IMG/VR virus record: IMGVR_UViG_3300042558_003926
Location: 1-64,000 of that record
Direction: 5' to 3' (one strand)
Length of the DNA stretch: 64,000 bases
Positions 2,924-47,065 of the stretch are shown here, piece by piece. A program made the position numbers and the translations under genes. The notes under the pieces were generated by a model. It had not been told where the DNA came from and made no database searches. It worked only from the letters and a program-made list of their open reading frames with translations. Positions within the stretch are counted from its first letter, which is position 1. The number at the start of each line of letters is the position of its first letter.

Positions 2924-2933
2924 AAAATAAATA

Positions 2934-3755
2934 ATGTCAGTACAAAAAATATTTTATAACGCATCGCTTCCGAGGTCTGGATCAACTTTGCTTCAGAATG
3001 TGATGATGCAGAATCCAGACATCTATTCTACTCCAACTTCCGGGGTTGGTGAGCTATTATTGTCTGCGAGAACTATCTATTCAAACGGTGATGCCTTCAA
3101 AGCTCAGGATCCAGAAGAAATGAAGAAAGCTTTTGGTGGATTCTGTAAGGGTGGGATTTATGGATATTTTAATGCTCTTACGGATAGACCTTATGTTCTG
3201 GAAAAAAGTAGAGCATGGTTAGGTCACAGATCTTTTGTAGACTTTTTCGACGAAAATCCTAAGATCATAGTAATGGTTAGGGATTTGAGAAGTGTATTTT
3301 CATCTATGGAAAAAAACTTTAGAAAAAATCCGCATAAGGATCCCCTGATAGTTAACGGAGCCGAATTGAAAAATATGACTACTCCTGCGAGGATAGATCA
3401 TTTTTCTGTTTCCCCTCCTATTGGTCCTTCTTTAGAGTGGCTGTTCGAATCTGTTCACCAAGGATATGATAAAGACATTCATTTTATTAAATTCGAGGAC
3501 TTTTCTATTGATCCAGAGACAGAGATCAAGAAGATATACAACTATCTAAATCTACCATATTTTAAACACGATTTCGAAAATGTTCAGCAACTAACCCACG
3601 AGAATGATGTGATTCATGGAATATTCGGGGATCATAAAATATCTCCTAAAGTTAGACCAGTTCCCGAAGATTATATTGATATATTGGGTAAAGTAGAGTC
3701 AGATAGATTAAGAAACCACTATGATTGGTTTTATAAAAGATTCAAATATATATAA
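2934..3755 (+). CDS. PAPS-dependent sulfotransferase
   Basis: 5'-phosphosulfate-binding loop LPRSGSTLL, 3'-phosphate motif MVRDLRSVFSS, and IKFEDF..DPE.EIKKIYNYL. Confidence 0.85.
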   Translation: MSVQKIFYNASLPRSGSTLLQNVMMQNPDIYSTPTSGVGELLLSARTIYSNGDAFKAQDPEEMKKAFGGFCKGGIYGYFNALTDRPYVLEKSRAWLGHRSFVDFFDENPKIIVMVRDLRSVFSSMEKNFRKNPHKDPLIVNGAELKNMTTPARIDHFSVSPPIGPSLEWLFESVHQGYDKDIHFIKFEDFSIDPETEIKKIYNYLNLPYFKHDFENVQQLTHENDVIHGIFGDHKISPKVRPVPEDYIDILGKVESDRLRNHYDWFYKRFKYI

Positions 3756-9411: not shown

Positions 9412-10206
9412 ATGCCTAGAAGAAAACCGAAACCAGAGAAAGTTGTCGAGGAAAAAATAAAGGAAAGTCTCGATTCTATAATAATGCAGGAGGCCCTTGA
9501 GAATATACTTCCTGACAGCGACGAACTACCAAGATTAAAGACAACGGATTTAATGGATTTTTCAGGAGAAAAATCTACTGCTTTATCTGATGCTAAGGCT
9601 TTACTTGATACTATAACAAAATTCTACATGGACGACACGAGCATGAGCGAGGCCTCGCACGTGGAGTTTAAAAAGAAGGTTGATGCGATGAATTTATCAT
9701 CGATGATGTTTCAGCTTAAAAGTGCTCAGCATGCTATAACAAAAATACTAGAGGAGATAGATCTTGGTAATATGCACCCTAGACTTTTTGAAGTTCTGGC
9801 TCAATTGCAATCGCAGATCATGCAGATGCCTAAAGACTACCAGGCATATCTCGAAAAGATGGAACAGAACTATAAGAAGACAAGGATAGAAGTTGATGAG
9901 AAAAAGCATTCTCAGGGTATAGTAATGGACCAATCCTCAGGAGATTCGGGATTTTATGTTAGTAACACTGCGGTTACACAAGACGGAGGACTTAAATCCA
10001 GAGGAACACGTGGAATTATGGAGGGACTGAGAGATATTATAGGTTCCGAGGTGGTGGACGTAAAACCCGAGGTACTTGATCCGAATGCCGTAGTAAATGC
10101 TAGAGAAAAGAAAATATTGGATTCGCAGAATCCTAATAATAAATCACATTTTAACGAGGAAGATCAGGAGGAAGATTTTTCTATAGAAGATGATATACTA
10201 GAATAA
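9412..10206 (+). CDS. Terminase small subunit (gp16-like)
   Basis: HPRLFEVLAQL resembles the T4-like PRAxEV motif; TAATG coupling to the large subunit. Confidence 0.7.
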   Translation: MPRRKPKPEKVVEEKIKESLDSIIMQEALENILPDSDELPRLKTTDLMDFSGEKSTALSDAKALLDTITKFYMDDTSMSEASHVEFKKKVDAMNLSSMMFQLKSAQHAITKILEEIDLGNMHPRLFEVLAQLQSQIMQMPKDYQAYLEKMEQNYKKTRIEVDEKKHSQGIVMDQSSGDSGFYVSNTAVTQDGGLKSRGTRGIMEGLRDIIGSEVVDVKPEVLDPNAVVNAREKKILDSQNPNNKSHFNEEDQEEDFSIEDDILE

Positions 10207-12026
10207 TGGAGACCGGAATAGAAAAGGTTGAACAGATAGAAACTAACCACTGGTCTACTTCCAGGGTAGAGGAATTATTAAGAAAAGTTGATGAAGAGGG
10301 ACTGGACTATAAGTCCGTTGATAATCCTTTTCATGACAATGACCCAGAATTAAAAAGATCTAATATTCTTTGGGAATATACCAGAGAGGAAATATTGGAA
10401 ATGAAAAAATGTGCTGAGGATGTCAGCTATTTCGCCAAGTATTGTAAAGTAATGACCGATACTGGTTTAGATTACATAAGGCTGAGAGACTACCAAACAT
10501 CGGTACTAAGAGAATATCAGAATCATAGGTTTAATATATTTCTAGCCCCCAGACAGGTTGGTAAATCCATCACATCATCAATAATACTAGTTTGGTATCT
10601 CTTATTCAATCACGATAAAAATGCGATGATTCTTGCCAACGTAGGGGATACTGCGGAAGAGCTAATGGATAAGATTAAGGCTATTATTAAAGGTCTTCCT
10701 TTTTATATGAAACCGGGTATGTTGGTTAACAACGTGATGACCATGAGATTTGATAATGGATGTAGGGTATTAGCTAAAACTACTACCAAAACTTCCGGTA
10801 TTGGTTTTACCATCCACTTCTTATACATGGATGAGTTTGCTCATATTAATTCTAACTTTATAGAGGCTTTCTTTAGATCAACATACCCTACTGTATCTTC
10901 ATCTAAGGTTTCTAGAATTATCATCACATCAACTCCGAATGGGATGAATAAATTTTATGAGATCTATCAAGGAGCACTGACAGGAGAAAATAGTTTTAAT
11001 CCAATAAGAGTAGACTGGTGGCAGGTTCCAGGAAGGGACGATGAGTGGAAGAAGAGAGAAATAGGTAACTTAGGAAGCGAGGAGCTTTTTAATCAAGAAT
11101 ATGGCAACCAATTTCTTAGTTCTTCCAGCCTTTTACTGGGATCTGATGAACTCAGAAAAATAAGGAATAACGAAGTAGAATACGCTTGGAGAGAGATCTC
11201 CAATCTCCATTATGCTGATGTCAATTACGAGAATCTTATATGGCATCCGAAATTTGATTTAGATAAGGCAAATCTACCAGGTAAGAAGTTTGTTTTTTCG
11301 GTGGACCTTAGTAGTGGTGCAAAGGGTGATTTTACAGTAATAAACATATTTAAGGTTACTCCACTTCCTAGAGCTGTTATTGAAAAAATGGAAGAATTTG
11401 AAGATGAAGCAGACTTTTTTGGACTGATTCAAGTTGGAGTTTTTAGAGACAATGAGATTAAACTTGAGGATATTACTAAGCTTCTACAGATACTATGTTC
11501 GGAGGTTTTTGAAGTTGATAGGGTTAAAATCGCTCTGGAAATGAACTACAAAGGTGAGTTGGTTTACGATAAACTCTCACAGAGGGATGACTTTTATGAC
11601 GAGATGTTTCTTTTTACTAAGCATACCGAATCTGCAAGGGTGCTAAAGCCAGGAATTAAATACAACGAGAAGAACAAAATGAAATATTGTGAGCTTCTTA
11701 GAAGTCTGATGAGGAGGGATAGAATCATGGTTAACGATAAAAAATGGACCATCCCCGAATTATTCACTTTTGGACTAAATAATTCTGGAACATATTCAAG
11801 TCAGAGCGGACACGATGATGTTGCTATGACTCTTGTAAATTTACCTGGATTGTTTGATGGCTATGATTTCAATCAGATAGTAGGTGAGGTATTTGATGAA
11901 TTAGAGGACAATTCATACAAAGACATGATTATCAAAAAATTAGAATCTGGATTTAGAGGAGAGGAAGAAAAAGGATACTCCACTAAAGATGGTAAAAGCT
12001 ATGGAGATTTCAACAATCTACTATAA
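10206..12026 (+). CDS. terL: Terminase large subunit (T4 gp17-like)
   Basis: LRDYQ, APRQVGKS (Walker A), LYMDEFAH (Walker B), TSTPNGMNKFY, FNQEYGNQF, GHDDVAM. Confidence 0.95.
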   Translation: METGIEKVEQIETNHWSTSRVEELLRKVDEEGLDYKSVDNPFHDNDPELKRSNILWEYTREEILEMKKCAEDVSYFAKYCKVMTDTGLDYIRLRDYQTSVLREYQNHRFNIFLAPRQVGKSITSSIILVWYLLFNHDKNAMILANVGDTAEELMDKIKAIIKGLPFYMKPGMLVNNVMTMRFDNGCRVLAKTTTKTSGIGFTIHFLYMDEFAHINSNFIEAFFRSTYPTVSSSKVSRIIITSTPNGMNKFYEIYQGALTGENSFNPIRVDWWQVPGRDDEWKKREIGNLGSEELFNQEYGNQFLSSSSLLLGSDELRKIRNNEVEYAWREISNLHYADVNYENLIWHPKFDLDKANLPGKKFVFSVDLSSGAKGDFTVINIFKVTPLPRAVIEKMEEFEDEADFFGLIQVGVFRDNEIKLEDITKLLQILCSEVFEVDRVKIALEMNYKGELVYDKLSQRDDFYDEMFLFTKHTESARVLKPGIKYNEKNKMKYCELLRSLMRRDRIMVNDKKWTIPELFTFGLNNSGTYSSQSGHDDVAMTLVNLPGLFDGYDFNQIVGEVFDELEDNSYKDMIIKKLESGFRGEEEKGYSTKDGKSYGDFNNLL

Positions 12027-15100: not shown

Positions 15101-15458
15101 TCAGCAAGTTAATTCAGCATTTAATCTTGTTCACGTTAGAGATCTATTGATTAGTGTAGAAAACGACGTTCAAGAGATCTTGGCTAACTACCTATTTGAT
15201 TTCAACGAAGATTCAATCAGACTAGAAATCAAAACATTAGTAGACAACTACCTAGATGGTGTTAGAGCTGGTGGTGGTATTTACGCTTACCAAACAATTA
15301 TGGATGCTTCTAATAATACCCCTGCAATCATAGATATGAACATGGGTATAATTGACGTCATAATAGAACCAGCAAGAGGAATCCAGAAGTTCATTAATCG
15401 AATCACGGTTACAAGAACTGGAGGAATTGCTTCTGGAGGATTCATACAATTTGTATAA
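12108..15458 (+). CDS. Contractile tail sheath protein (gp18-like) with large insertions
   Basis: SGVYTLEFD...VGFSNKGPFNTPV at the N-terminus; VPPAAYV, AGQKRG, GINPII, FGNQT, VHVRDLLI and LFDFNEDSIR at the C-terminus. Confidence 0.93.
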   Translation: MANKVKIDYSQFRASGVYTLEFDASQNVILTSQTIRLVVGFSNKGPFNTPVYIPDVTTLISIFGDIDRSLENKGSFFQRSILTCLNAGPVFALNLLRLNDDTDSANPDEVDYQAYSLDTEEYNGVVTSRLYSSYYNKERFWFADPNYFLATLSVSDQGKLFSLVNLGKSPMSIIVRKSTDSSKPLKGYDIFAIDWYGANNVPTFMHPFDYMSDYFIDVIAVYGDWTNYQALSIDPQWSTYFTENGFIKSRIDSFLSEPDVSIVTSVTGCIIPDFVDLNGVNQYVQTLINNSTPSTGLFCAIDEQAFDDICANGSKIDLVGNHLIDELTGDSDLPSPRINFLSYDQVLVADYLYTQNVVGVTGATGFVSATGATVYTSGAKVGTLYTLTGVTGATAGVVYQSFANYDPNAYDGGLHYLQTSGTGGTAGYLQTAAQKNELKTFLTVTSSNDQKFILGVVSGYTGGLTGGLINQFAEGDLVKLKVTGTKDVSGELRIFFTHPLDTGFYRSQGITVTPTYNLTSYNTGASGSNQPFYTDAYQFGNSDYVDIVSTSTPNGVTGPSAPLGVSNVLVGYNASSLYQDNKYAEITDGDIIWTNSSGSNVQYLGFEQTVDKDQFNYVNTRAFTNVSLADTTITNIAAFGTPYASNNVGLPVGTQNTDIVSQEGAINEFVDCSRIDVTTFLVTQDSNGNAPFSVGDLVVSTDLDICEPSTGNRQNRLAKITTVSATTTAGTFRVTSARPVLYYTSGSGVRVQKFKSIAQFTRSFDFTYLSGFTMTDWHRPNGSDARISEILDVMYNTNIAKTLAAKDVISYRYIIDTFSGQILPNSKYQLSRLAMLRQQALAIINAPSMAQFRASTDPRFTDAPTAANPYPRLNTAYIADGGNLSLNPSYTFSLPSEADGAKYAAFYSPYITVRETNRNVEVPPAAYVSNNFLRKFANGEPYAIIAGQKRGVISGGNIVGVEYDFTEEDRGNLEPFGINPIIKRRGIGVVIFGNQTAYQQVNSAFNLVHVRDLLISVENDVQEILANYLFDFNEDSIRLEIKTLVDNYLDGVRAGGGIYAYQTIMDASNNTPAIIDMNMGIIDVIIEPARGIQKFINRITVTRTGGIASGGFIQFV

Positions 15459-15497: not shown

Positions 15498-16052
15498 ATG
15501 GCAGGATTATCTCACTTTTCAAATTCGTTATCAGCAATAAATAGGTTTGAACCTGTTTATCTGAATCAATTCGAAGTTACTATTATACCACCAGCAGCAG
15601 TTGCCGGAGGTGAAATTTTACTTCAGCACGTATCCAAAGTAAGCGGTCTTTCTTTAGATAAGAACCCAGGACTTGCTACTCAGAAATTTAAGTTTGCTAA
15701 AAGAAATTACGCTGGAGCTAAGCCAGATCAGACATTCATGGATCTTAGTGTTAGTTTTTCTGTTAACTTGAACGATGATAACTCAATGTACGTTTTCAAA
15801 ACTCTGAGACAGTGGTCTGATTTAATTTACAATCCACTAACAGGAGCGATGGGATTAAAGAATGACTATGTAGGAACTATAGTAGTTAACATCTTTAATA
15901 AACAAGGTGATGTTTTTAGAAGGATTACTTGTAAAGATTGCTTTCTTACAAAGCCAATCTCTCCGATGAACCTAAACTATACATCAACTGACCTATACAA
16001 GATAGATGATATGGTATGGGCGGTGGACTACTGGGAGGATTTATTCCTATAA
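15498..16052 (+). CDS. Tail tube protein, paralog 1 (gp19-like)
   Basis: Follows the sheath; EPVYLNQFEV, LRQWSDLIYNPLTG..G.K.DYVG, DYWED. Confidence 0.85.
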   Translation: MAGLSHFSNSLSAINRFEPVYLNQFEVTIIPPAAVAGGEILLQHVSKVSGLSLDKNPGLATQKFKFAKRNYAGAKPDQTFMDLSVSFSVNLNDDNSMYVFKTLRQWSDLIYNPLTGAMGLKNDYVGTIVVNIFNKQGDVFRRITCKDCFLTKPISPMNLNYTSTDLYKIDDMVWAVDYWEDLFL

Positions 16053-16069: not shown

Positions 16070-16645
16070 ATGGCAGGACTACCACATTTTACCAATTCAA
16101 AAGCAGCTATAAGTAACTTCGAACCGGTTTATTTAAATCAGTTTGAGGTTATAATAAATCCACCTGCTGGTATAGTAGACGCCGCTACTACCTTTAACGG
16201 TGAGGGGATATTAGCTCAACAAGTTAAATCCATAACGGGTTTAGCAGTAGATATTTCTCCTGCAGCAACAATAGAGCAGAACTATAAGTTTGCTACAAGA
16301 AGATATGCAGGGGGTGAACCATCTACCACGGATATGACTCTTTCGATGGAATTTGAGGTCAATCTTAATGATCAAAATTCCATGACTGTTTATAAAATAC
16401 TAAGACAGTGGTCGGATCTAATTTACAACCCTCTAACTGGAGCTATGGGGATTAAATCAGATTATGTTGGATCTATGGTTATTCAGGTATTTAACAAAAG
16501 AGGTGACGTTTTTAGAAGAATAAGAATACCTTCTTGCTTTTTAAGTGAAGCTATAAATGCAATGGAGTTAGATTATGAGACCCCAGCAATATATAACCTT
16601 ACTGCTAGTTGGATCTGTGATTACTGGGAAGATACCTTCTTATAA
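16070..16645 (+). CDS. Tail tube protein, paralog 2 (gp19-like)
   Basis: Shares the same blocks as 15498..16052. Confidence 0.85.
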   Translation: MAGLPHFTNSKAAISNFEPVYLNQFEVIINPPAGIVDAATTFNGEGILAQQVKSITGLAVDISPAATIEQNYKFATRRYAGGEPSTTDMTLSMEFEVNLNDQNSMTVYKILRQWSDLIYNPLTGAMGIKSDYVGSMVIQVFNKRGDVFRRIRIPSCFLSEAINAMELDYETPAIYNLTASWICDYWEDTFL

Positions 16646-24940: not shown

Positions 24941-27571
24941 ATGGAATTCTTAAACCAGGTAAAAAAGCTAAAAGACACAACAAAATCTGCTGAAGTCAAA
25001 GCTCTTTGCGAAAATTTCCTTAATGGTGGATCTGTTTCTAAGGAGTTATTGATTGAATCTTTAGAGAATCACAATATATCTAATGATACCGTGAGCAATG
25101 TACAAAGCCACGTAGATGCTATAAGAAACGAAGAAATGGAAGCTTCAAGAAGAGTAGCAGAGTCAATTATGGAGTCTTGGGGCGGAATAAACAATAACAA
25201 ATCATTGGGTAATGCTGGATCATATGGCTCATTAAACGAGGCAGAAATGACAGATCCTGCTGCAGTAGAGAAAGCTTATAAGACAATAAAGAAAGGCGAG
25301 AAAGGGGAAAGAGTAAAAGAATTACAAATCTATCTTGCTGTACCAAATCCAGATGGTATTTTTGGACCAGCCCTAGAAACTAAAGTTAAGGAATTCCAAA
25401 AAGCTAATGGATTAACCACAGATGGTATGGTTGGAATTGCCACAATGAAAAAAATCATTGAGGTCTTAGGTAAGAAAAAGACTTTGGTTGACCAGATAAA
25501 AGAGATAGGAAAGAAATTCATTAGTGCTATAACTTCTGTAAAGGAAGAGGAATCATTCTTACAGGAGCTTGGAAGAGTAAGTTCGATTGATGGATCTGCA
25601 CAAGGGTTTTTAAAATCAAACGAGATTAATAATCTTGGTGTATTAGAATCTATTGGTATGATAAAAACATCATCCATCTATACATACCCTAAAGCTAGAA
25701 TTATATGCGAGCAATATCAGAATCTTATAGTAAATAAGAGAATACCTGAATTCGCATTAGTTCATAATTTTTTGAATGATATTCAACCTCTAAACTGGGA
25801 CGATACTGTTAAAGGAGTTTCCTCGGGTCTTATGGAAAAAGCAGAGACACTTTCAAGAGAGATCGAGGTTTCTAAAGTTATTGAATCAATAAAAAACACA
25901 GGAAGCTCCGCTTTCTATTCCGATCTTAATGATATTCTTAATGAGTGGTTAGTTTCCGAGAGTAAATCAAATGCCCTATTAGTTAAAAATATTTCTAAGT
26001 GGTCATTTAATCCAGTTGTTAGAAACTTAATCAACTTTATAAATGTAAATGAGAACACAGATAATAGAAGATTGGAAATTCCTACTATAGCTCAAGGAGA
26101 ATCTAGTGTATCTAGAGTTTTCTCTCCTGTTATGTTAGGGAGTCATAAATCTATCTTCTATCTAGGAGGAAACGTTTTTGAATCTAATTCTGCTGACATT
26201 AAGAAGCTAACAAGAAAAGAAGTTGCTGGCTTATCTAGCGATTATATTCAATTGATAGAATCTTTCAACAGACAATACGTTAGAGTTAACGAGGAAGGGA
26301 TTTTCGTTCAGTTAGGTAAAAGCACTGTTAGAATAATAGAGGAAGGAGAGGAAGTATCAGTTTATTTAGGAAAGAGAAAACTTAAATTTGGCGATCCTTC
26401 TGGATTAGCTAAAATATTAGGCTTAGAGTCAGCTACATATTTTGGAGTAAATGAAACTCAGGTCGTATCAGATATTATGAGACTTTACACTAACTACCAA
26501 AATATAGTTGAACTTGATTTCGCCAAGAGCATAGAATCAAATGTATTTGAAGGACTTGCTATCAATCTAATTAAATGGAATAATCAAATTTATCTTCAGA
26601 AGATTAACCAAGGAATGAATGAAAATTCAATCTATAAGGTTACTGGAAATCAGGCAGTATCAATGGTTAAGGAATTTATGAGATATGATATCTCTGAGGG
26701 ATTAACAGAATTTTTAGTTGGAGAAAATAGGGTTAAATCTATTATGGTAAATGACAGAAACAAGGTTATTGAGAACATTTCCAAAGTAGAGGAACAAATA
26801 AACAAGTTAGAAACATTAATGTCAACTAACCCTCTATATTCTGCTTCGCCTGAGATTATGTCAGCTAAAAAACTATTAGAGAATGAGCTTAACGTTCTTA
26901 GAGAGAAGTGGAACCAAATTAATATAGAGATATCTTCAGCTGAATCAACTATAGAATTGGAGAATTCTTTAGAAATCTTTGAAGATGAGAAATTTAACAT
27001 TGGCGATTTTATTAAAGTTAAAGAATCGGGAGATACTGGTAAGATAATTTCTATAGATGCTACTTCGGGAAGATACACGGTTCTTCTAGATACCGGTAAA
27101 ACTTCAGATTTTCTAATCAGTGAAATTACTGATTTAGAAGAGGCTCTTAGTCAAGCAGCTGAAGATAATGCTGATTCTTCGGATGAGGACGATTCAGAAG
27201 AGGAAGTAAAAGAGAACTTTGATATGTTAAGCGGTAACGGAAACAAACTTAACAAATCAGAAATGCCTCTATCAGATCAGAAGAAACTTTTGACTGATTT
27301 TTCAAAAGGGCATGGATTTTCTAAAGCCCCTGGAGATCATAAAGGAACAATCGACATGAAGATGGATTCGCTACATGGGTACAATTCAACGATGAATGAA
27401 GATGAGGGCTCAAAAAAAAACCCCAGTCGTAACTTCTACTTCGCTCCAAAATCAGAAGATCAGAATAAAAAAGGAAACCCTTTCGTCCAATCCTCTAAAG
27501 GAAAACTAAGCAAGGCACCAACAGGAAAAAACATAGTAGAAGAAGAGGAAGAGGGAGGAGAAAAGGAATAA
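24941..27571 (+). CDS. Large putative head/virion protein with peptidoglycan-binding (PG_binding_1-like) domain
   Basis: IKKGEKGERVKELQ..L...DGIFGPALETKVKEFQKANGLTTDGMVG; several (L/I/M)xE putative prohead-protease sites. Confidence 0.7.
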   Translation: MEFLNQVKKLKDTTKSAEVKALCENFLNGGSVSKELLIESLENHNISNDTVSNVQSHVDAIRNEEMEASRRVAESIMESWGGINNNKSLGNAGSYGSLNEAEMTDPAAVEKAYKTIKKGEKGERVKELQIYLAVPNPDGIFGPALETKVKEFQKANGLTTDGMVGIATMKKIIEVLGKKKTLVDQIKEIGKKFISAITSVKEEESFLQELGRVSSIDGSAQGFLKSNEINNLGVLESIGMIKTSSIYTYPKARIICEQYQNLIVNKRIPEFALVHNFLNDIQPLNWDDTVKGVSSGLMEKAETLSREIEVSKVIESIKNTGSSAFYSDLNDILNEWLVSESKSNALLVKNISKWSFNPVVRNLINFINVNENTDNRRLEIPTIAQGESSVSRVFSPVMLGSHKSIFYLGGNVFESNSADIKKLTRKEVAGLSSDYIQLIESFNRQYVRVNEEGIFVQLGKSTVRIIEEGEEVSVYLGKRKLKFGDPSGLAKILGLESATYFGVNETQVVSDIMRLYTNYQNIVELDFAKSIESNVFEGLAINLIKWNNQIYLQKINQGMNENSIYKVTGNQAVSMVKEFMRYDISEGLTEFLVGENRVKSIMVNDRNKVIENISKVEEQINKLETLMSTNPLYSASPEIMSAKKLLENELNVLREKWNQINIEISSAESTIELENSLEIFEDEKFNIGDFIKVKESGDTGKIISIDATSGRYTVLLDTGKTSDFLISEITDLEEALSQAAEDNADSSDEDDSEEEVKENFDMLSGNGNKLNKSEMPLSDQKKLLTDFSKGHGFSKAPGDHKGTIDMKMDSLHGYNSTMNEDEGSKKNPSRNFYFAPKSEDQNKKGNPFVQSSKGKLSKAPTGKNIVEEEEEGGEKE

Positions 27572-27692: not shown

Positions 27693-28052
27693 ATGGCTAA
27701 AGATTATGTAAAAAATAGTGAATTGTTGGCCGCGGTAGTGGAATCCAAACAAAAGGGACATTTAACCCCAGATACTATAGAGATGTTTAATCTAATGATA
27801 CACGGGATATCCAAAAAAATGTCATATAAAGATCCGGAAGACAGGGAAGATTGTATGGCCTTTGCCATGGAAGATCTTTGCAAGTATTGGAATAGATTCA
27901 ATCCCGATAAATCGAATAATCCATTTGCTTATTTCACACAAATAGCTAAGAATGGTTTTGCTAAAGGATGGAAGAAAATACATCCACCTAAGAGTCCAAG
28001 AACTATACCTTTTAGCTACATTACAGGAGAGGATAATACATATAACGTATAA
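27693..28052 (+). CDS. Late transcription sigma factor (T4 gp55-like), short
   Basis: YVKNSELL, DREDCM..AME...KYWNRFNPDKSNNPFAYFTQIA matches the gp55 signature. Confidence 0.88.
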   Translation: MAKDYVKNSELLAAVVESKQKGHLTPDTIEMFNLMIHGISKKMSYKDPEDREDCMAFAMEDLCKYWNRFNPDKSNNPFAYFTQIAKNGFAKGWKKIHPPKSPRTIPFSYITGEDNTYNV

Positions 28053-28063
28053 AATTCTTTTTA

Positions 28064-28549
28064 ATGGTTGATATTAAGAAAGTAAAACCTAACGGAGAAT
28101 ATCGGTCAGGTAAATATGAACCCAGAAATCCGGAAAAGTACATAGGTGATATACACAATATCATATACAGATCCTCGTGGGAGTATAGATTCTGTACTTA
28201 CTGTGATACAAACGAATCGATTTTAAAATGGAGTTCTGAACCAGTATCGATAGATTACTACAATCCATTAGACAAGAAGGATCATAAATATAATGTTGAT
28301 TTCTATATAAAGGTTCTAAAGGAAAGTGGGGAAGAGCAAGATTGGATCATTGAAATAAAACCAGAGAATCAGACAAAAAAACCTATTTATGAGGGTGTAA
28401 ATACTCTGAGTAAGCTAAAATCTTATAATAGAAATATGCAGATTTGGATAACAAATCAGGCTAAGTTTAAGGCAGCTAAAGAATGGGCATCGAAGAGAGG
28501 ATTTAAATTTGGTGTGATAGATGAAAATTTTCTTTTTAGAAGTAAATGA
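28064..28549 (+). CDS. Head completion nuclease (T4 gp4-like)
   Basis: PRNPEKYIGD..NIIYRSSWE..FC.YCD.N..ILKWSSE, YNVDF, IEIKP. Confidence 0.9.
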   Translation: MVDIKKVKPNGEYRSGKYEPRNPEKYIGDIHNIIYRSSWEYRFCTYCDTNESILKWSSEPVSIDYYNPLDKKDHKYNVDFYIKVLKESGEEQDWIIEIKPENQTKKPIYEGVNTLSKLKSYNRNMQIWITNQAKFKAAKEWASKRGFKFGVIDENFLFRSK

Positions 28550-29169: not shown

Positions 29170-30843
29170 ATGGCTGGATTCGTCGAAAATAATAATCCCG
29201 GACAAACCCCTGTTATTCAGAGGATCAGGGATTCAGTAAGAAAATTAAGTACCTTCGGTATGAAGTACGATGACATGGTCATTCGTAACTCCCAAGCTGT
29301 TGGTGTAACTGAGGCATCGTTCCTTAATAAGAATAAATCCAATGTAGAGGATGAGAGCATGCTTTGGACCCTTGCTAAGCAAGATATATCTTCTAAACAA
29401 TTTATCGGGTACTTTGATAAGGACTATAAGGGTAAAAGAGATTATTTAAGAAAGTTTTCTCTTAATCCTGAAATAGAGTGGGTTTTAGATACGATATGCG
29501 ACGAGTCTATTTCTTATGATCCCTCTAATTTTTTCGCATATCCCGATTTTATAGATCTCAGTGATATTAACGAAAAGCTGAAGGATGATTTATATGAGAC
29601 ATTCAAGAAGCTTTATGATATATGGGGATTCTCCGATGATATTACCGCATGGCAATATTTCAGACAATTCATAGTTGATGGGTTTTTAGCTTTTGAGATT
29701 ATCTATGATGATAAAGGAAAGGAGATAGTTGGATTTAAAGAATTAGATCCAATATCTTTAATACCCAGTGTAGAAAAACAAATAGACGGATCCTTTATTA
29801 ATACATGGACTCAGTATCCTCAAGATCCTAAGAAAAAAAGAGTCCTTTATGACCCTCAGATAATTTACATTTCATACGCTAAGGGTAATGCTGTATCAAG
29901 AGTAAGCTACATAGAGAGATTAATAAGACCTTATAATATTCTTCGAATTATAGAATATACGAGAGTAATTTGGTCTGTAATGAACGCTTCATTTAAGCTA
30001 AAAATGACGGTTCCTATTGGTAGTAAATCCCAACAAAAGGGTATGCAAACACTGGGAGAACTAATGAGCATTTATAAGGAGGATATTCAATTGAATGACG
30101 ATAGTGGAGAATTAAGTATAGACGGAAGGCCTAAGATACAATTTTATAAAAACTACCTAATGCCTTCTGGCGTTAACGGAACGCCTTCTATAGAACCTAT
30201 AACAACAGATGGACCTAACCTTAACGACCCAGCTCCTCTAGCGTATTTCTTTGATAAATTTATACTTGAATCTAAAGTCCCTCCTTCAAGATTTCATAAC
30301 CCAGACGGAGGTACAACTTCTCCATATTCTAACGGGGCTGAGGGGTTAGACAAAGAAGAAATAAGATTTGCTAAGTTTATTTCTAGATTGAGATCAATAT
30401 TCCAGGAAATAGTAACAAAACCACTCTGGATACAAATGGTGAAGAAGTATCCTAAACTGGAGGATGATTTTATGTTTAAGAGTCAATTAGGACTTGATTA
30501 TTTCTCGGATAACCCATTTAAGTTAAATCAAGAAATTGATATAATAAACAAAAGAAAAGAGGCGGTAGCTGCTTTAGGTGGAATCATGGGAGATGAGGAA
30601 AAACCCTTTTTCTCTAATGCTTTCCTAATAGAAACATACCTAGGAATTTCTAAGCAAGATATTGATGCTAACAAGGAGGCATTAAAAAGGAAAGAGAAAG
30701 AGAAGAAGGAAAAAGAGAAAGAAGGAGAAGCTGGAGAAGAAGGAGGAGAAGCTGGAGCAGAATCCTCTACTGAAACAGCAGAGGAAACCCCTCCTGCAGA
30801 GGGAGAAGAAAAAACTACTGAAGAAACACCTCCTGCAACCTAA
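29170..30843 (+). CDS. Portal protein, paralog 1 (T4 gp20-like)
   Basis: PEIEWVLDTICDESI, FRQFIVDG, GFKELDP, SYIERLIRPYNILRIIE, KVPPSRF, EEIRFAKFISRLRSIF. Confidence 0.9.
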   Translation: MAGFVENNNPGQTPVIQRIRDSVRKLSTFGMKYDDMVIRNSQAVGVTEASFLNKNKSNVEDESMLWTLAKQDISSKQFIGYFDKDYKGKRDYLRKFSLNPEIEWVLDTICDESISYDPSNFFAYPDFIDLSDINEKLKDDLYETFKKLYDIWGFSDDITAWQYFRQFIVDGFLAFEIIYDDKGKEIVGFKELDPISLIPSVEKQIDGSFINTWTQYPQDPKKKRVLYDPQIIYISYAKGNAVSRVSYIERLIRPYNILRIIEYTRVIWSVMNASFKLKMTVPIGSKSQQKGMQTLGELMSIYKEDIQLNDDSGELSIDGRPKIQFYKNYLMPSGVNGTPSIEPITTDGPNLNDPAPLAYFFDKFILESKVPPSRFHNPDGGTTSPYSNGAEGLDKEEIRFAKFISRLRSIFQEIVTKPLWIQMVKKYPKLEDDFMFKSQLGLDYFSDNPFKLNQEIDIINKRKEAVAALGGIMGDEEKPFFSNAFLIETYLGISKQDIDANKEALKRKEKEKKEKEKEGEAGEEGGEAGAESSTETAEETPPAEGEEKTTEETPPAT

Positions 30844-30865
30844 GGAGAATATAATATTATAACTA

Positions 30866-32476
30866 ATGGCAGGATTTTTAGATTTTTTAAAACCAAATCA
30901 ATCAGCTTTAGGAAATATCCTAAAGAACCTTTCCAATGTTGCAAAATTTGGAATGCAATATGATGATATGGTTGTTAGAAACTCTCAGGCTATTGGTAAA
31001 ACTGAGGGATATTTTTTCAATCAAGAGAGCACTGGTTTTACTCAAAATGATGCCTTTCAGTGGACCGCTTCCTATCAAGATACCAAGGTAAGAAAATATA
31101 TTGCTTATTTTGACAAGGATTACATCGAGAAAAGAAATTATTTAAGAAAATTTTCTTTAAATGGTGAGATAGAGTTCATTCTAGATACCATAACGGATGA
31201 ATCGATCGTATACGACGATCGTAATTATTTCGCTCAGCCATCTTTTGTTAATCTTGACTTAAAGGACAAGATCAAAGATAAACTTGCTTCGCATTACAAT
31301 AGAATATACAATGTATTTGGATTTCAAAATACAATTCTTGCATGGCAATACTTTAAGCAATTTTTAATTGATGGATTTTTAGCATTTGAAATAATTTACG
31401 ATAACAAAGGAAGAGAGATAATAGGATTTAAGGAACTAGACCCAACCTCACTTCAGCCTGTGGTAGAGAAGGTAGCAGAAAATGAATATAGACAGTTTTG
31501 GATTCAGTACCCGAAGAATCCACAAATGACAAGAAAGCTAACCAATGAGCAGGTGATCTATATTTCTTATGCTAAGGGAAATACCATTTCAAGAGTTAGC
31601 TATATAGAAAGACTGGTTAGATCATACAATATTCTAAGAATAATGGAAAATTCCAGAGTTATCTGGAACGTAATGAATGCTTCCTATCGACTAAAATTCA
31701 TCATACCTATAGGTAGTCAATCTCCGCAAAAAGCCATGCAAACATTAGGACAGTTGATGTCCAATTATAAGGAGGATATTTCTATTAACGATTCTTCTGG
31801 TGAATTAACAATAAACGGAAGACCAAAGGTACAATTTTATAAGAACTATCTCTTTCCTGAAAAAGATGGACAGAGCCCAGATATATCATCTCTTAATTCG
31901 GCAGGTCCAGATTTTAACGTAATGGAGAATGTCGTATATTTTTTCAATAAATTAAAAATGGATTCTAAGATTCCCTATGCTAGATTTGCTTCTAAAAATA
32001 CTACGCCGGGAAATTATCAGACTAGCATAGATCAGCTAGAGAGGGATGAGATAAGATTCGAGAAATTTTTAAGAAGATTAAGATCCATATTCCAGGAGAT
32101 TCTAGTAAAACCCCTCTATATTCAAATGTGTTTAGATTACCCTGAACTATCCAGGGATAAAGGATTCAAAGCAAATATAGGATTAAATTATAATAGAGAT
32201 AGTGAGTTCGAGGAAATGGTAGAACTTGCTGGGTTTACAAAAAGGACCGAGTTTATAAACGGGTTAAAAGAATTGAAAGTTAAAATAGGAGAGGAAGAAA
32301 AAGGATACTTCGATCCGGATTTCTTGATTCAAAGATTCCTAGGCATGAATCCAGACCAGATAAAAATGAATCAAAAGTACAAAGAGAAAGAGGAGAAGGA
32401 GGCAGAAAAAGCTAAAGAAGAAGGTGGAGGAGAAGGCGAAGAATCCGGAGGTGGGGGTCAAACCGTTACTCTATAA
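30866..32476 (+). CDS. Portal protein, paralog 2 (T4 gp20-like)
   Basis: Same motifs, including KIPYARF and RDEIRFEKFLRRLRSIF. Confidence 0.9.
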   Translation: MAGFLDFLKPNQSALGNILKNLSNVAKFGMQYDDMVVRNSQAIGKTEGYFFNQESTGFTQNDAFQWTASYQDTKVRKYIAYFDKDYIEKRNYLRKFSLNGEIEFILDTITDESIVYDDRNYFAQPSFVNLDLKDKIKDKLASHYNRIYNVFGFQNTILAWQYFKQFLIDGFLAFEIIYDNKGREIIGFKELDPTSLQPVVEKVAENEYRQFWIQYPKNPQMTRKLTNEQVIYISYAKGNTISRVSYIERLVRSYNILRIMENSRVIWNVMNASYRLKFIIPIGSQSPQKAMQTLGQLMSNYKEDISINDSSGELTINGRPKVQFYKNYLFPEKDGQSPDISSLNSAGPDFNVMENVVYFFNKLKMDSKIPYARFASKNTTPGNYQTSIDQLERDEIRFEKFLRRLRSIFQEILVKPLYIQMCLDYPELSRDKGFKANIGLNYNRDSEFEEMVELAGFTKRTEFINGLKELKVKIGEEEKGYFDPDFLIQRFLGMNPDQIKMNQKYKEKEEKEAEKAKEEGGGEGEESGGGGQTVTL

Positions 32477-43276: not shown

Positions 43277-45307
43277 ATGCCAACAACTCAAAGACTTAAT
43301 GAAGAATTGGTTTTCATTCTTGAAAGACAAGAACTTTTCCTTGAATCCAAAAAGGAGGGATCTAGCGATTATGTTCTAGAGGGTATTGCTGCTGTTTTCG
43401 GTAAAGAAAATAACAATAATCGAATCTACGAGGAAAAAGAATATCTACCTCACTTGGATTACCTTAGAGATAAGATCAAGCAGAGAAGATTAGTTGGTGA
43501 ATTAGACCACCCTGAAAAATTCGACGTTTCACTTAAGAACATTTCTCATATCATAGAGAAGCTAGATTACGATAAGGGAAATAGACAACTTAAAATTAAA
43601 GTTAGATTATTGGACACCCCTGCTGGAAAAATAGCTAAGAATTTAGTTGATGCTGGAGTTCCTTTATCTATATCTTCTAGAGCTGCTGGATCAGTTGGTG
43701 GAGATAAGAAAGTACAGATTAAAAAGATATTCACTTACGATCTAGTTGCAGATCCTGGTTTTCAAGACGCACAGTTAGAAAGAGTATATGAGAGTGCAGG
43801 TTTCACTTATGAAGAATTCTTCGCAAAGAGAAATAACACTATCCTAAACACACTAACTTGCTTAAATGAATCTCTAGGTCTGGAAAACGAATCCCCAGTG
43901 AAGATATATAGAGTTGAAAACAACGAAGAATTTAATAAACTCGTGAAAACAGACAAAAATAAAACATCCCTTATGGAGAATAATGAATTTGTTACCGCTG
44001 ATGAATTGAATCAATATTCCATCTTTCTTAAGAAGGAAATGGATTCGATGAAAAATGAGCTGACAACTATTAGACAACAAAGAAATTCTATTACTGAATC
44101 TAATAGCGATTATTCTAAATCTTTGGTTAGCCAACTTGAGAATAGAGTAGCTAAGTTAGAGAAATATTCAGAATATCTTGCTGAGAATTTAGATAACGCA
44201 ATTAAATACGGAGAATATCTTGCTGAGAATTTAGATCAGAGCATTAATTACAGTAAGTATTTAGCTGAGAACTTAGATAAGAATATTTCTTATTCTAAAT
44301 ATCTTTCTGAAAACGTAGATAAAAACATTTCTTATTCTAAATATCTTGCTGAGAACGTAGATAAGTCAATCAGCTATACTGAGTATGTAGCAGAGAACGT
44401 AGATAGAAATATCGAATACTCTAAATACTTAGCTGAAAAATTAGACCACTCTATCCAATATTCTGAATATTTAGCTGAAAACGTTGATAACAACATCGCA
44501 TACAGCGAGCATATTGCAGAAAATGTTAATAGCGGAATTGCTTATACCGAGTATGTAGCTGAAAAACTAAACGACGGTATTGAATACAGTGAGTATCTTG
44601 CTGAGAATTTGAGTAAAACTATTTCTTATACTGACTATTTAGCAGAAAATCTAAATAGAGGTTTAGATTACTCGGAGTACTTAGCTGAAAAAGTTAAAAG
44701 AGGTATTGATTACACAGAATACATCGCAGAAAGCATTAATGGCTCAGCATCTGGATTAGATATGGGTACATCTTCTGTTCCTCACGTAGGCAACTTAAGA
44801 GAAAATGTTGATGTTAGCTATCATGCAGGACTAAACGAGTCTGGATTTGCTGGAAGCTACGACAATCTTACTTCAAGAATAGATAATTTGATTGAATCGG
44901 TTAAAACACAAAAAACCGAGTCAAATATAAACGAGGCTGCTTCTAGATTTCAGTCTCAAGCCAATACACAAAAGGCTCAAACAGGTGTTCTAAATGAATC
45001 AATTAACGAAGGAGCAACAGGTCTTAAATTTATTGATGAAATGCCAGAGGAATACACTTCAATTTGGGAGTCTCTAAACGAAGGGCATAAGCAATCAATC
45101 ATTGCTCAAAGCCACTTCTACAGATTAGATACTGCATACCAAATTAAGAATTTCTGGTCTACTCGTCAATTAGGAGCTAAAACTTTCGGAGTTCAAAAAT
45201 TGGACGAGAACGAGAATCTAAATGAAAATAACGCTACGCAAGGCTACTCAAGTGATTATATGAATTACATAGCTTCAGCGTTAGAACAAAAATTTCAAAA
45301 AAGGTAA
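43277..45307 (+). CDS. Prohead protease (gp21-like) fused to scaffold/core domain
   Basis: LEGI, NNNNRIY, GELDHP, SHII, LDTPAGKI, ISSRAAGSV, TYDLVADPGF, followed by coiled-coil repeats. Confidence 0.9.
   Translation: MPTTQRLNEELVFILERQELFLESKKEGSSDYVLEGIAAVFGKENNNNRIYEEKEYLPHLDYLRDKIKQRRLVGELDHPEKFDVSLKNISHIIEKLDYDKGNRQLKIKVRLLDTPAGKIAKNLVDAGVPLSISSRAAGSVGGDKKVQIKKIFTYDLVADPGFQDAQLERVYESAGFTYEEFFAKRNNTILNTLTCLNESLGLENESPVKIYRVENNEEFNKLVKTDKNKTSLMENNEFVTADELNQYSIFLKKEMDSMKNELTTIRQQRNSITESNSDYSKSLVSQLENRVAKLEKYSEYLAENLDNAIKYGEYLAENLDQSINYSKYLAENLDKNISYSKYLSENVDKNISYSKYLAENVDKSISYTEYVAENVDRNIEYSKYLAEKLDHSIQYSEYLAENVDNNIAYSEHIAENVNSGIAYTEYVAEKLNDGIEYSEYLAENLSKTISYTDYLAENLNRGLDYSEYLAEKVKRGIDYTEYIAESINGSASGLDMGTSSVPHVGNLRENVDVSYHAGLNESGFAGSYDNLTSRIDNLIESVKTQKTESNINEAASRFQSQANTQKAQTGVLNESINEGATGLKFIDEMPEEYTSIWESLNEGHKQSIIAQSHFYRLDTAYQIKNFWSTRQLGAKTFGVQKLDENENLNENNATQGYSSDYMNYIASALEQKFQKR
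44165..44752 (+). repeat. 14 x 42-bp coding repeat, Y(S/T)(E/K)Y(L/V/I)AE(N/K)(L/V)xxxIx
   Basis: Counted from the translation, from YSEYLAENLDNAIK to YTEYIAESINGSAS. Confidence 0.9.
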
Positions 45308-45325: not shown

Positions 45326-47065
45326 ATGAAACTGATTAACGAACAAGAAATCTATGATACCTGGTCTCCGATTATCGAGAGCAAAGCTGGTATCACAGAA
45401 GAAAGCAAAAAAGGTTGGTTGACTAAATACTGTCACTACCATTCATTAAACGAATCTGCTGGAGCTTATAACACTCTTGGTGTTGTAAACGGTATGGGTA
45501 ACGTTGCCCCACCAGCATTCCCTGGTGCTACTATTGGTGGTACTTCATTCTCAACAGGCGCTAACGCTGGTTTCTACAACACAGCTTGGCAAGGATCTGG
45601 AGATAAATTCCCTTCACTTCTTCCATTGGCTATTCAGGTAGCTGCGAAGACTGTAGGTTTTGATATCGTTCCAGTTATTCCTATGTCTGGTCCTACTGGT
45701 ATCTTGTCTTACTTAGACTACGTATACGCAGGTGGTAAAACTAACGCTGCTACTGCTGCTACATCTGGAGACAGTTTAGCAAAAGCTCCAGCTATGATTA
45801 AATTCCCAGTTTATCAAACTGCTTTAGGTACTGGTGTTACTGGTGCTACTGCAGGTACATTTACTGTTGGACAAAATTACGCTCTTACTAACGGTGGTAC
45901 AATAAACTTATTGTTTGTTGGTCTATCAAGAATTGACGGTTTCCCTATATTCGAGATCAATCCTTCTACAGTTGGTGGTGTAACTGGTATAACTGATGGC
46001 TATAACGTAGCTGGTATCATCAACGGTACTCCTGCTCAAGTAGGTTCTAGCGGATTCTATACTGGTGCTACTTCAGTTAACTACTTAGCTCAGTTAGTTA
46101 AAGGTCTAGAAGATCACATCCAAGGTTTCTCCGGTGCTGGTTTCAATAACACCGACGCTTGGCAAGGTCCTTACGTAGATGGTACTAAGACTTACAACCC
46201 GATGTTAAGAGGTGTTGGTGAGTCTACTTACTACAACTCAATGGGTCTATCGACTTTCACTAAGTTCGTAGAAGCTGAAACTTTCCAAGTAGCTGCTTCT
46301 GTTACAACTGAGCAAATCCAAGACCTTAACAAACAATTCGGTATCGACGTTATCTCAATGATCGAGAACGCATTGGTTAATGAGGTATCTCAGTCTATTA
46401 ACAAGCACATCCTTTCTAGAGCATTCGCTTTAGGTTGGTCTAACCACATCCAGTTCAACAATGTTGAAAACCAAAACTTGAACTTGAACTTGGTAATCGG
46501 TGGTGGTTCTGGTACTACATCAGCTTACGTTAAGAAAGACGATACTACTGGAACTATGGTTATCCCTGGTGGTCCTGCTTCAGGAGGTTACGAGAACTTG
46601 TCAACTTTACAAAGAAGACTATTCTCAAGAATCCTTGCAGCTGCAAACGTAGTAGCTAACAGAGGTCGTAGAGGTCCTGCTAACTTCATCGTTACTAACG
46701 CTGCAGTAGCAAGTGCACTTCAAGATATCTCTCAGTTCACTTTCGCTCCATTCTCTAACACGTTAACTCAAAATAACGGTACTTTATACCCTGTAGGTTC
46801 ACTTGCTGGTATGACCGTTTACGTAGATCAGAACATGAGATACGACGATACACGTGTATGTATTGGTAGAAAAGGTGGTGACGATGAGCCAGGATTGAAA
46901 TTCATGCCTTACATGATGGCTGAGTCAATTCAGACTATCTCTGAAGGTACAATGTCACCTAAAATCGCGGTTAAATCAAGATACGCTCTAGTTGAAGCTG
47001 GTTTCTTACCAGAGACTATGTACTTGACATTCTATGTTAACGTACCTGCTGGAGGTTTAGCTTAA
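45326..47065 (+). CDS. Major capsid protein (T4 gp23-like)
   Basis: WSPIIE, V.PMSGPTG, TTEQIQDL, EV.QSINK, RRGPANFIV, KIAVKSRYAL; strongly biased codon usage. Confidence 0.93.
   Translation: MKLINEQEIYDTWSPIIESKAGITEESKKGWLTKYCHYHSLNESAGAYNTLGVVNGMGNVAPPAFPGATIGGTSFSTGANAGFYNTAWQGSGDKFPSLLPLAIQVAAKTVGFDIVPVIPMSGPTGILSYLDYVYAGGKTNAATAATSGDSLAKAPAMIKFPVYQTALGTGVTGATAGTFTVGQNYALTNGGTINLLFVGLSRIDGFPIFEINPSTVGGVTGITDGYNVAGIINGTPAQVGSSGFYTGATSVNYLAQLVKGLEDHIQGFSGAGFNNTDAWQGPYVDGTKTYNPMLRGVGESTYYNSMGLSTFTKFVEAETFQVAASVTTEQIQDLNKQFGIDVISMIENALVNEVSQSINKHILSRAFALGWSNHIQFNNVENQNLNLNLVIGGGSGTTSAYVKKDDTTGTMVIPGGPASGGYENLSTLQRRLFSRILAAANVVANRGRRGPANFIVTNAAVASALQDISQFTFAPFSNTLTQNNGTLYPVGSLAGMTVYVDQNMRYDDTRVCIGRKGGDDEPGLKFMPYMMAESIQTISEGTMSPKIAVKSRYALVEAGFLPETMYLTFYVNVPAGGLA

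Follow-up and report, generated by a model that had tools for sequence, protein, structure and literature searches.

A clade of uncultured jumbo phages (contigs up to 430 kb) keeps two diverged, co-evolving copies of the portal gene side by side, as well as two copies of the tail-tube gene, which most likely means that the DNA-entry ring of these phages is built from two different subunits, although this composition is inferred from sequence alone. We examined a window of 64,000 nt, the first 64 kb of the 289,651-bp genome in IMG/VR record IMGVR_UViG_3300042558_003926, in which an earlier note had described two full-length, intact, tandem gp20-like portal genes that share long blocks but are substantially diverged and have different acidic tails. 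This observation is correct in each of these respects. The note had inferred either a hetero-dodecamer (for example, alternating 6+6) or a second specialised vertex, and our analysis supports this interpretation only in part, since the evolutionary evidence favours the former and gives no support to the latter.

A tandem pair of T4-type portal genes

We found that the two ORFs, portal A and portal B, each match the T4-type portal family Portal_T4 over nearly the whole 433-position model (193 and 234 bits; cut-off 22.9 bits) (Table 1). BLASTP of A against B gave 51% identity over 507 aa (521 bits, E = 0), far beyond chance, and the blocks singled out in the note (YFDKDY..KR.YLRKFSLN.EIE; AWQYF.QF..DGFLAFEIIYD.KG.EI.GFKELDP; IYISYAKGN..SRVSYIERL) are all present in the alignment. 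The C-terminal tails are both acidic and low in complexity, but differ in length and sequence. A search of the whole genome returned exactly these two portal matches, and thus the genome departs from the single portal gene of the canonical homododecameric portal.

Table 1. Features of the 64-kb window (window positions; domain limits are approximate, from alignment to T4 gp20 with limits from PMC4493910)
Position	Strand	Feature	Support
10206..12026	+	Terminase large subunit, single copy; packaging partner of the portal	phrog_5989 and phrog_2; no paralogue in all-against-all BLAST of the genome
12108..15458	+	Tail sheath, single copy	phrog_34521, E 5e-120; no paralogue
15498..16052	+	Tail-tube paralogue 1 (184 aa)	phrog_32623, and phrog_45 tail tube; 56% identical to its neighbour
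16070..16645	+	Tail-tube paralogue 2 (191 aa)	56% identical to its neighbour
27693..28052	+	gp55-like late sigma factor, syntenic in relatives	phrog_234, E 1.1e-15; same order in three related loci (L091-L093)
28064..28549	+	gp4-like head completion (head closure) protein with a TnsA-like N fold	phrog_218, E 5.7e-47; PF08722 on the orthologues in L091-L093
28546..29148	+	gp2-like DNA end protector, immediately upstream of portal A (21-nt gap)	phrog_429; PF26869 Phage_T4_gp2 on the orthologues in L091-L093
29170..30843	+	Portal paralogue A (P0001; 557 aa, gp20-like): N-terminal region 1-83, wing 84-248 and 396-446, stem 249-272 and 354-368, clip 273-353, tunnel loop 369-395, crown 447-522, then an acidic tail	PF07230, E 8.9e-57, model positions 7-431; phrog_213; profile match to T4 gp20 structures 3ja7, 6uzc and 9lu6; top Foldseek matches are T4 gp20 chains
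30844..30865	+	22-nt spacer between the stop of A and the start of B	No + strand terminator; 1-23 nt in relatives
30866..32476	+	Portal paralogue B (P0002; 536 aa, gp20-like): same domain layout as A, different acidic tail	PF07230, E 3.9e-69, model positions 3-433; phrog_213
43277..45307	+	Prohead maturation protease (gp21-type), single copy	phrog_207; no paralogue
45326..47065	+	gp23-type major capsid protein, the only strong copy	PF07068, E 3.6e-41; a weak second match (1.4e-6) outside the window at genome position 170510-171421

The pair lies in a head-morphogenesis and packaging context of T4-type late genes. To examine the predicted fold, we aligned the profile with T4 gp20 (residues 77-523) and built AlphaFold2 monomers from 47-row alignments. 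The top 13 Foldseek matches were T4 gp20 chains (E down to 3.6e-15; about 15-17% sequence identity), which confirmed only the family, since the models were of low confidence (pLDDT 60 for A and 53 for B), good only in the wing and poor in the clip, with TM-scores of about 0.35.

Retention and evolution of the two copies

If the second gene were a local accident or a decaying duplicate, we expected sporadic loss among relatives, a test that had been proposed along with phylogeny and dN/dS. We found instead that none of 160 related IMG/VR and ENA contigs lacks a copy: the portals are always arranged A then B, 159 contigs show both with junctions of 1-23 nt, one (L005) ends inside A, and one short contig has a stop in A. 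The IMG/VR searches listed roughly 560 relatives in all (374 and 184 candidate stretches). In contrast, eleven outgroup lineages have a single portal (LR756500, LR756501, LR756502, LR756504, LR745206, Lak-C1, PTm1, and the representatives P0004, P0014, P0058 and P0007), although searches of IMG/VR with the LR756500 and P0004 portals returned only 1 and 2 loci, too few to sample the nearest single-copy groups.

Trees show one ancient duplication. In a mixture-model tree, the A-type genes of both subclades plus the representative P0003 group together with support 99, the B-type genes group with support 95, and the two groups join with support 99, to the exclusion of all other (non-pair) representatives, of which P0004 and P0006 are confirmed single-copy. 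In another tree, the A and B subtrees mirror each other, with stem lengths of 0.49 and 0.44. Both copies are under equally strong purifying selection (dN/dS about 0.02), dN of A against dN of B has a slope of 1.01 (r 0.95), and there is no gene conversion, since within-genome A/B identity (0.51) equals between-genome identity. We considered and rejected a recent duplication, an assembly artefact and a pseudogene, since the pair recurs in contigs from dozens of different metagenomes, with about 50% divergence and dN/dS of 0.02.

We also asked if the copies co-evolve above background. On a fixed topology (66 loci, 125 branches), tree lengths were 5.54 for A and 5.53 for B, and the residual branch-rate correlation of A with B (Pearson 0.76, Spearman 0.68) was the highest of 21 gene pairs. 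The next pair reached 0.39, and the adjacent pairs gp2-A and B-ligase reached 0.28 and 0.14. Rate covariation could partly reflect a shared recombination history of the two-gene block, or simply a shared function.

These results bear on two of the alternatives. We considered that the second copy might be a redundant dosage duplicate, or a decoy against host defences, since some bacterial pattern-recognition defences are reported to detect phage portal proteins. This appears very unlikely, since a redundant copy would be lost or decay in some lineages, and none has; a decoy would not need every domain under dN/dS of 0.02 at exactly the rate of the real portal; and the duplication is very old. 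We also considered that one copy is the true portal and the other, with the same fold, is an accessory head-assembly or DNA-gating component (a second stacked ring, an assembly chaperone, or a plug at the same vertex). Giant phages often elaborate head structures with paralogue families (PMC5694885), T4 uses gp24, a paralogue of its capsid protein, for a different position, and the acidic tails of A and B differ. However, an accessory copy is normally freed from part of the ancestral constraint and evolves asymmetrically, whereas here stem lengths, tree lengths, dN/dS values and the numbers of sites conserved in only one copy (21 for A, 23 for B) are all symmetrical, such that neither copy is relaxing. 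By alignment to T4 gp20, both copies also keep every domain, including the invariant clip-helix lysine (A K290, B K289) that aligns with T4 K296. Thus, we consider this alternative unlikely, and the asymmetric divergence expected of a positional paralogue of the gp23/gp24 type is not observed.

Paralogue-specific residues and the inferred composition of the ring

We next examined where A and B differ, using an alignment to T4 gp20 of roughly 17% identity, and thus not a real interface. In clade I, 21 of 31 fixed A/B differences lie in the stem, clip or tunnel loop, which make up 146 of 506 sites (Fisher P = 4e-6), while only 4 of 215 wing sites differ in a fixed way. Across both subclades, sites with disjoint residue sets show the same bias (13 against 8, P = 0.002). 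In T4 these regions form the inter-subunit core, the DNA channel valve and the terminase/neck docking site (PMC4493910; PMC12929587). We also looked for fixed charge reversals, which could show whether interfaces are complementary between or within paralogues, but the fixed differences include none.

We favour, with moderate confidence at best, the explanation that the two genes encode two subunit types of one portal ring. In this view, a single tandem duplication occurred in the ancestor of the clade, and both copies have since been kept as an adjacent, co-transcribed pair whose products would be made together late in infection. Because they keep the same predicted fold, N-terminal assembly region and wing surface, they would co-assemble into a mixed dodecamer at the single portal vertex, most simply an alternating A6B6 ring with true six-fold symmetry, in which the paralogue-specific residues would give two alternating kinds of subunit interface, channel valve loop and docking site for terminase and neck. 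Loss of either copy would be lethal, which would explain the strict co-retention. Co-expressed paralogues of a homo-oligomer cross-assemble by default and can become mutually dependent. Our analysis demonstrates the duplication, its age, its strict retention, the equal and strong constraint on both copies, their rate covariation and the location of the paralogue-specific residues, but co-expression, assembly as a dodecameric ring at one capsid vertex, co-assembly of A with B, the 6+6 stoichiometry and the alternating order are inferred. A complex prediction of A with B (residues 25-515 of each, with matched orthologue alignments) scored 0.04 and 0.11 against a mark of 0.32, which is not evidence either way, and no cultured relative exists in the phage collection.

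The main competitor is that A and B form two separate homododecameric portals, used in different particles (two virion forms), or under different conditions or in different hosts. Each copy is a complete portal by family match, the paralogue-specific residues in the ring core would also be expected if the copies had evolved to avoid each other, and with the tail tube duplicated in the same clade, two alternative portal-plus-tube sets are conceivable. Nevertheless, we consider this unlikely. The spacing leaves no room for separate regulation in most relatives, rates are identical with very high covariation, and no lineage among the 160 contigs has dispensed with either copy. Moreover, terminase, sheath and protease have no second copy, and the gp23-type capsid gene has only one weak second match, so there is no second set of head genes for a second kind of particle; and the portal and tube do not touch in T4-type virions, because the neck proteins lie between them (PMC12929587). 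The symmetrical evolution of the copies, their shared wing and N-terminal regions and the lack of other duplicated head and packaging genes (apart from that weak capsid match) likewise give no support to a second specialised vertex.

The tail tube and comparison with known systems

The earlier note did not include the duplication of the tail-tube gene. We found two copies in 23 genomes of the pair-bearing clade and one copy in 7 outgroups. The tail-tube tree is compatible with one duplication on the same stem, but its deep nodes are weak (51/53 and 46/83) because the protein is short. The shared distribution suggests a coordinated change of virion architecture, not an isolated oddity. It is possible, though we consider it doubtful, that this clade has halved the symmetry of its whole head-to-tail axis, with an ordered A6B6 portal and a tube built from two alternating paralogues (three-fold rings, or alternating rings), the two duplications having arisen together and been locked in ever since. 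If so, this would be the first natural heteromeric portal, and a genetic rather than conformational solution to symmetry matching at the phage neck.

The nearest relatives of both paralogues in the annotated phage collection are huge Mahaphage-type phages (LR756500-LR756504, LR745206, Prevotella Lak phages and Tenacibaculum phage PTm1), at 30-44% identity. These share the conserved N-terminal motif and the gp2-portal synteny, but each has one full-length portal gene and one tail-tube gene. T4 gp20 (structures 3JA7, 6UZC, 9LU6, 9MKB) and every solved portal we found are built from one gene product, as twelve identical subunits (PMC4493910; PMC12929587), whereas here two genes are kept together across a whole clade. 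The T5 tail-tube protein pb6, a duplication and fusion that forms a pseudo-hexameric trimer, shows that duplicating a ring-forming virion module can halve the true symmetry of the ring while keeping its geometry (PMC5717097), the same logic as proposed here for the portal (12 to 6) and possibly the tube (6 to 3); however, in pb6 the copies are fused in one polypeptide and the protein is the tube, while here the copies are separate genes with inferred co-assembly. T4 gp23 and gp24 are a structural paralogue pair retained long-term within one assembly (PMC5694885), but gp24 occupies different positions (the vertices) in different copy number and is strongly diverged from gp23, while the portal pair evolves symmetrically and there is only one portal vertex to fill.

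We found no report of duplicated or heteromeric portals in the literature searched, which is not exhaustive. The portal is the most conserved machine of tailed phages and herpesviruses, and in every structure we found it is a ring of twelve identical subunits. A natural two-subunit portal would show that this rule can be broken, would offer a ring with built-in six-fold symmetry for studying how 12-fold portals mate with 5-fold capsids and motors and with 6-fold necks, and would be a clean viral example of a homomer turning into an obligate heteromer after duplication. The pair also matters for annotation and virus-completeness tools, which treat the portal as a single-copy marker.

Finally, we considered that stop-codon read-through might yield an A-B fusion. 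The junction is in frame in 61 of 80 subclade-II loci but only 27 of 79 subclade-I loci, which is chance level. No alternative genetic code was needed for the window.

Two full-length portal genes in a T4-like late module

We first confirmed that the window contains two intact portal open reading frames in tandem, as claimed in the earlier note, and the coordinates it reported for them were exact. Each protein, referred to here as A and B, matches the Pfam Portal_T4 (gp20) family over almost the entire model (E 8.9e-57 for A and 3.9e-69 for B) and also matches the PHROG portal family. A and B are 51% identical over 507 residues, all of the shared sequence blocks described in the note are present, and the acidic C-terminal tails of the two proteins differ, as the note had also stated. 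The 22-nt spacer between the genes contains no + strand terminator. The window is the first 64 kb of a 289,651-bp IMG/VR virus record that CheckV rates as complete, and these two genes are the only portal matches in the whole genome. Thus, the observation made in the note is correct.

The two portal genes are part of a T4-like late module, which runs in the order gp55-like late sigma factor, gp4-like head completion protein, gp2-like DNA end protector, portal A, portal B, DNA ligase, clamp loader, guanylate kinase and exonuclease. The window also contains genes encoding the terminase large subunit, tail sheath, prohead protease and gp23-type capsid protein. To find out if other virion genes are duplicated, we compared all 366 ORFs of the genome against each other. 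We found no second copy of terminase, sheath or protease, and only weak matches for the capsid gene, but we did find a second tandem pair among the core virion genes, which encodes two tail-tube-like proteins that are 56% identical. This comparison also revealed three sets of paralogues outside the window (see table), as well as an endolysin-like or peptidoglycan-binding segment (residues 100-187) in an 876-aa protein encoded in the window, a module that is repeated in two other genes of the genome, at 191 kb and 288 kb. This 876-aa protein may be a virion-associated lysin.

Coordinates of the portal genes, the tail-tube genes and other features in the window, its genome (G000) and related sequences
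Sequence	Position	Strand	Feature	Details
Window	29170-30843	+	Portal paralogue A	557 aa
Window	30866-32476	+	Portal paralogue B	536 aa
Window	15498-16052		Tail-tube-like protein	First of tandem pair
Window	16070-16645		Tail-tube-like protein	Second of tandem pair
Window	24941-27571		Protein with endolysin-like or peptidoglycan-binding segment	876 aa
Genome G000, outside the window	234424-239281 and 273173-279179	- and +	Family of nine paralogous genes in two clusters	224-351 aa, 33-73% identical; matches only PHROGs of unknown function
Genome G000, outside the window	97537-102473		Three tandem paralogues	523, 555 and 555 aa, about 30% identical; weak N-terminal matches to tail-fibre families
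Genome G000, outside the window	197214-198752 and 270090-271643		Two related proteins	512 and 517 aa, 28% identical over full length; no PHROG match
L144 (related contig, subclade II)	1527-3161		First portal gene	In-frame TAG
L089 (LR756501)	15166-15351		Open frame matching the end of the portal model	101 aa
MK250029 (Lak-C1)	180527-181822		Portal match	6 in-frame TAG codons
MK250029 (Lak-C1)	433892-434464		Tail-tube match	1 in-frame TAG codon

Distribution and age of the portal duplication

To find out when the duplication arose, we examined relatives of the two genes. The nearest annotated phages are the huge uncultured phages LR756500-LR756504 and LR745206, the Prevotella Lak phages and Tenacibaculum phage PTm1, at 30-44% identity, but IMG/VR holds a large family of closer contigs. 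In the 80 best loci (65-100% identical to A), every contig that reaches past the first gene carries A followed by B, with both genes intact and the A stop and B start separated by 1-23 nt (79 of 79 junctions); the 80th contig (L005) ends inside A. A profile search of 1.84 billion representative proteins yielded one further member of the group (P0003), whose contig shows a second portal gene starting 9 nt downstream before the contig ends. Using P0003 as bait, we recovered a second subclade of 184 contigs, and all 80 loci examined from this subclade again carry a tandem pair, with junctions of 2-11 nt. The only defect seen in the 160 contigs is in L144, in which the first portal gene has a TAG where its 98%-identical relative, L137, has TCA (Ser); since this contig is a single 5.2-kb piece, the TAG could reflect a sequencing error, a real nonsense variant or suppression. 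We also noted that in 61 of 80 subclade II loci (L102-L181) the stop of the first portal gene and the ATG of the second are 3, 6 or 9 nt apart, and thus in frame, such that stop read-through would make a fused A-B protein. In contrast, the in-frame share in subclade I is at chance level (27 of 79).

Phylogenetic analysis with a site-heterogeneous model placed the A-type genes of both subclades plus P0003 in one clade (support 99) and the B-type genes in another (support 95), and the two together form a clade (support 99) that excludes all other (non-pair) representatives, of which we confirmed P0004 and P0006 (the LR756500 portal) as single-copy. Within subclade I, the A and B subtrees mirror each other and have nearly equal stems (0.49 and 0.44). 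Moreover, eleven outgroup lineages each have one full-length portal gene: LR756500, LR756501, LR756502, LR756504, LR745206, Lak-C1, PTm1 and the lineages of the representative proteins P0004, P0014, P0058 and P0007. One of these outgroups, the 735-kb phage LR756501, has in addition to its full portal a 101-aa open frame that matches only the last 58 positions of the portal model and looks like a remnant of a portal gene. In Lak-C1, the in-frame TAG codons in the portal and tube matches are in line with TAG being read as a residue in that phage, but the phage of the window shows no such recoding. Thus, there was one ancient duplication, gene order has been fixed since then, and no contig in the sample lacks a copy.

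Selection, rate covariation and the sites that distinguish A from B

We next examined the constraints on each copy. Pairwise dN/dS among orthologues is about 0.02 for both A and B, and dN of A and dN of B across genome pairs correlate with r = 0.95 and a slope of 1.01. Within-genome A/B identity (0.51) equals between-genome identity, and thus there is no gene conversion. To assess covariation, we fixed a topology from seven concatenated genes (66 unique loci, 125 branches) and re-estimated the branch lengths gene by gene. A and B have identical tree lengths (5.54 and 5.53), and after removal of the background rate their branch-rate residuals correlate at 0.76 (Pearson) and 0.68 (Spearman), the highest of 21 gene pairs. 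In contrast, the next pair reaches 0.39, and the physically adjacent pairs gp2-A and B-ligase reach only 0.28 and 0.14. These interpretations are complicated because shared recombination of the two-gene block could contribute to the covariation, and because two proteins with the same function would covary to some degree even if they sat in separate rings.

To locate the differences between the paralogues, we mapped the T4 gp20 domain limits (PMC4493910) through a profile alignment to solved T4-type portals; since this alignment is distant (about 17% identity), the mapping should be read at the level of domains, not residues. In subclade I, 31 sites are conserved within A and within B but differ between them. 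Of these, 21 fall in the stem, clip or tunnel loop, which make up 146 of 506 sites (Fisher p = 4e-6), while only 4 of 215 wing sites and 2 of 75 N-terminal sites differ in this way. Across both subclades only 6 sites are universally fixed, but sites with non-overlapping residue sets retain the same bias (13 in the core against 8 elsewhere, p = 0.002). Sites conserved in only one copy are balanced, with 21 for A and 23 for B. In T4, the stem and clip carry much of the inter-subunit packing, the tunnel loops touch their neighbors and act as the DNA valve, and the clip is the docking site for terminase and for the C-terminal arms of the gp13 adaptor, which insert between adjacent clip helices (PMC4493910; PMC12929587). 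Both paralogues retain the invariant clip-helix lysine that aligns with T4 K296.

A possible mixed portal ring and the parallel tail-tube duplication

These data exclude a recent, redundant or decaying duplicate, and we consider it very unlikely that the second gene is a decoy or dosage copy. The data also argue against an asymmetric accessory paralogue, since every measure of divergence is symmetrical, although an accessory ring or assembly factor remains an unlikely possibility, about as unlikely as two separate homomeric rings. The most economical reading is that both proteins are subunits of the one portal ring, based on the evidence that they are made from adjacent genes with no room for separate control in most relatives, that they keep the same assembly-relevant regions, that they co-evolve more tightly than any neighboring pair, and that there is only one set of partners (capsid, protease and terminase) for them to work with. 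We consider this mixed-ring reading somewhat more likely than not, and have less confidence in the specific alternating order of an A6B6 ring, which would have true six-fold symmetry. In T4, the 12-to-6 step is taken one layer further out, between the gp13 dodecamer and the gp14 hexamer (PMC12929587). While the duplication, its age and retention, the constraint on both copies, their covariation and the location of the paralogue-specific sites come directly from our analysis, expression of the two genes together, their co-assembly and the stoichiometry and order of subunits are inferred from sequence alone; a single complex prediction returned no verdict and the monomer models were poor. The note's proposal of a hetero-dodecamer is partly supported. 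Full-text literature searches found no report of duplicated, paralogous or heteromeric portals. A and B are clear members of the known gp20 family; what differs is that, across a populous clade, they break the rule of one gene and, as subunits of a mixed ring, would also break that of twelve identical subunits, in a manner that is easy to test.

The tail-tube duplication has the same distribution as the portal duplication. All 23 genomes of the pair-bearing clade that include the region (G000-G003 and 19 more) have two tandem tube genes and two portals, while two further contigs end before the tube region; in contrast, seven outgroups have one of each. The tube tree is compatible with one duplication on the same stem, but is weakly resolved. 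Because all of the two-copy genomes form one clade, this counts as one evolutionary event, not many. Even so, the two ring-forming proteins of the DNA conduit doubled together while sheath, capsid and terminase did not, and T5 pb6 shows that duplication of a tube module can give a pseudo-hexameric ring of true three-fold symmetry (PMC5717097). We also note that both portal paralogues begin with MAGF, as does the LR756500 portal, and both tube paralogues begin with MAGL, which may be chance or a shared N-terminal processing signal.
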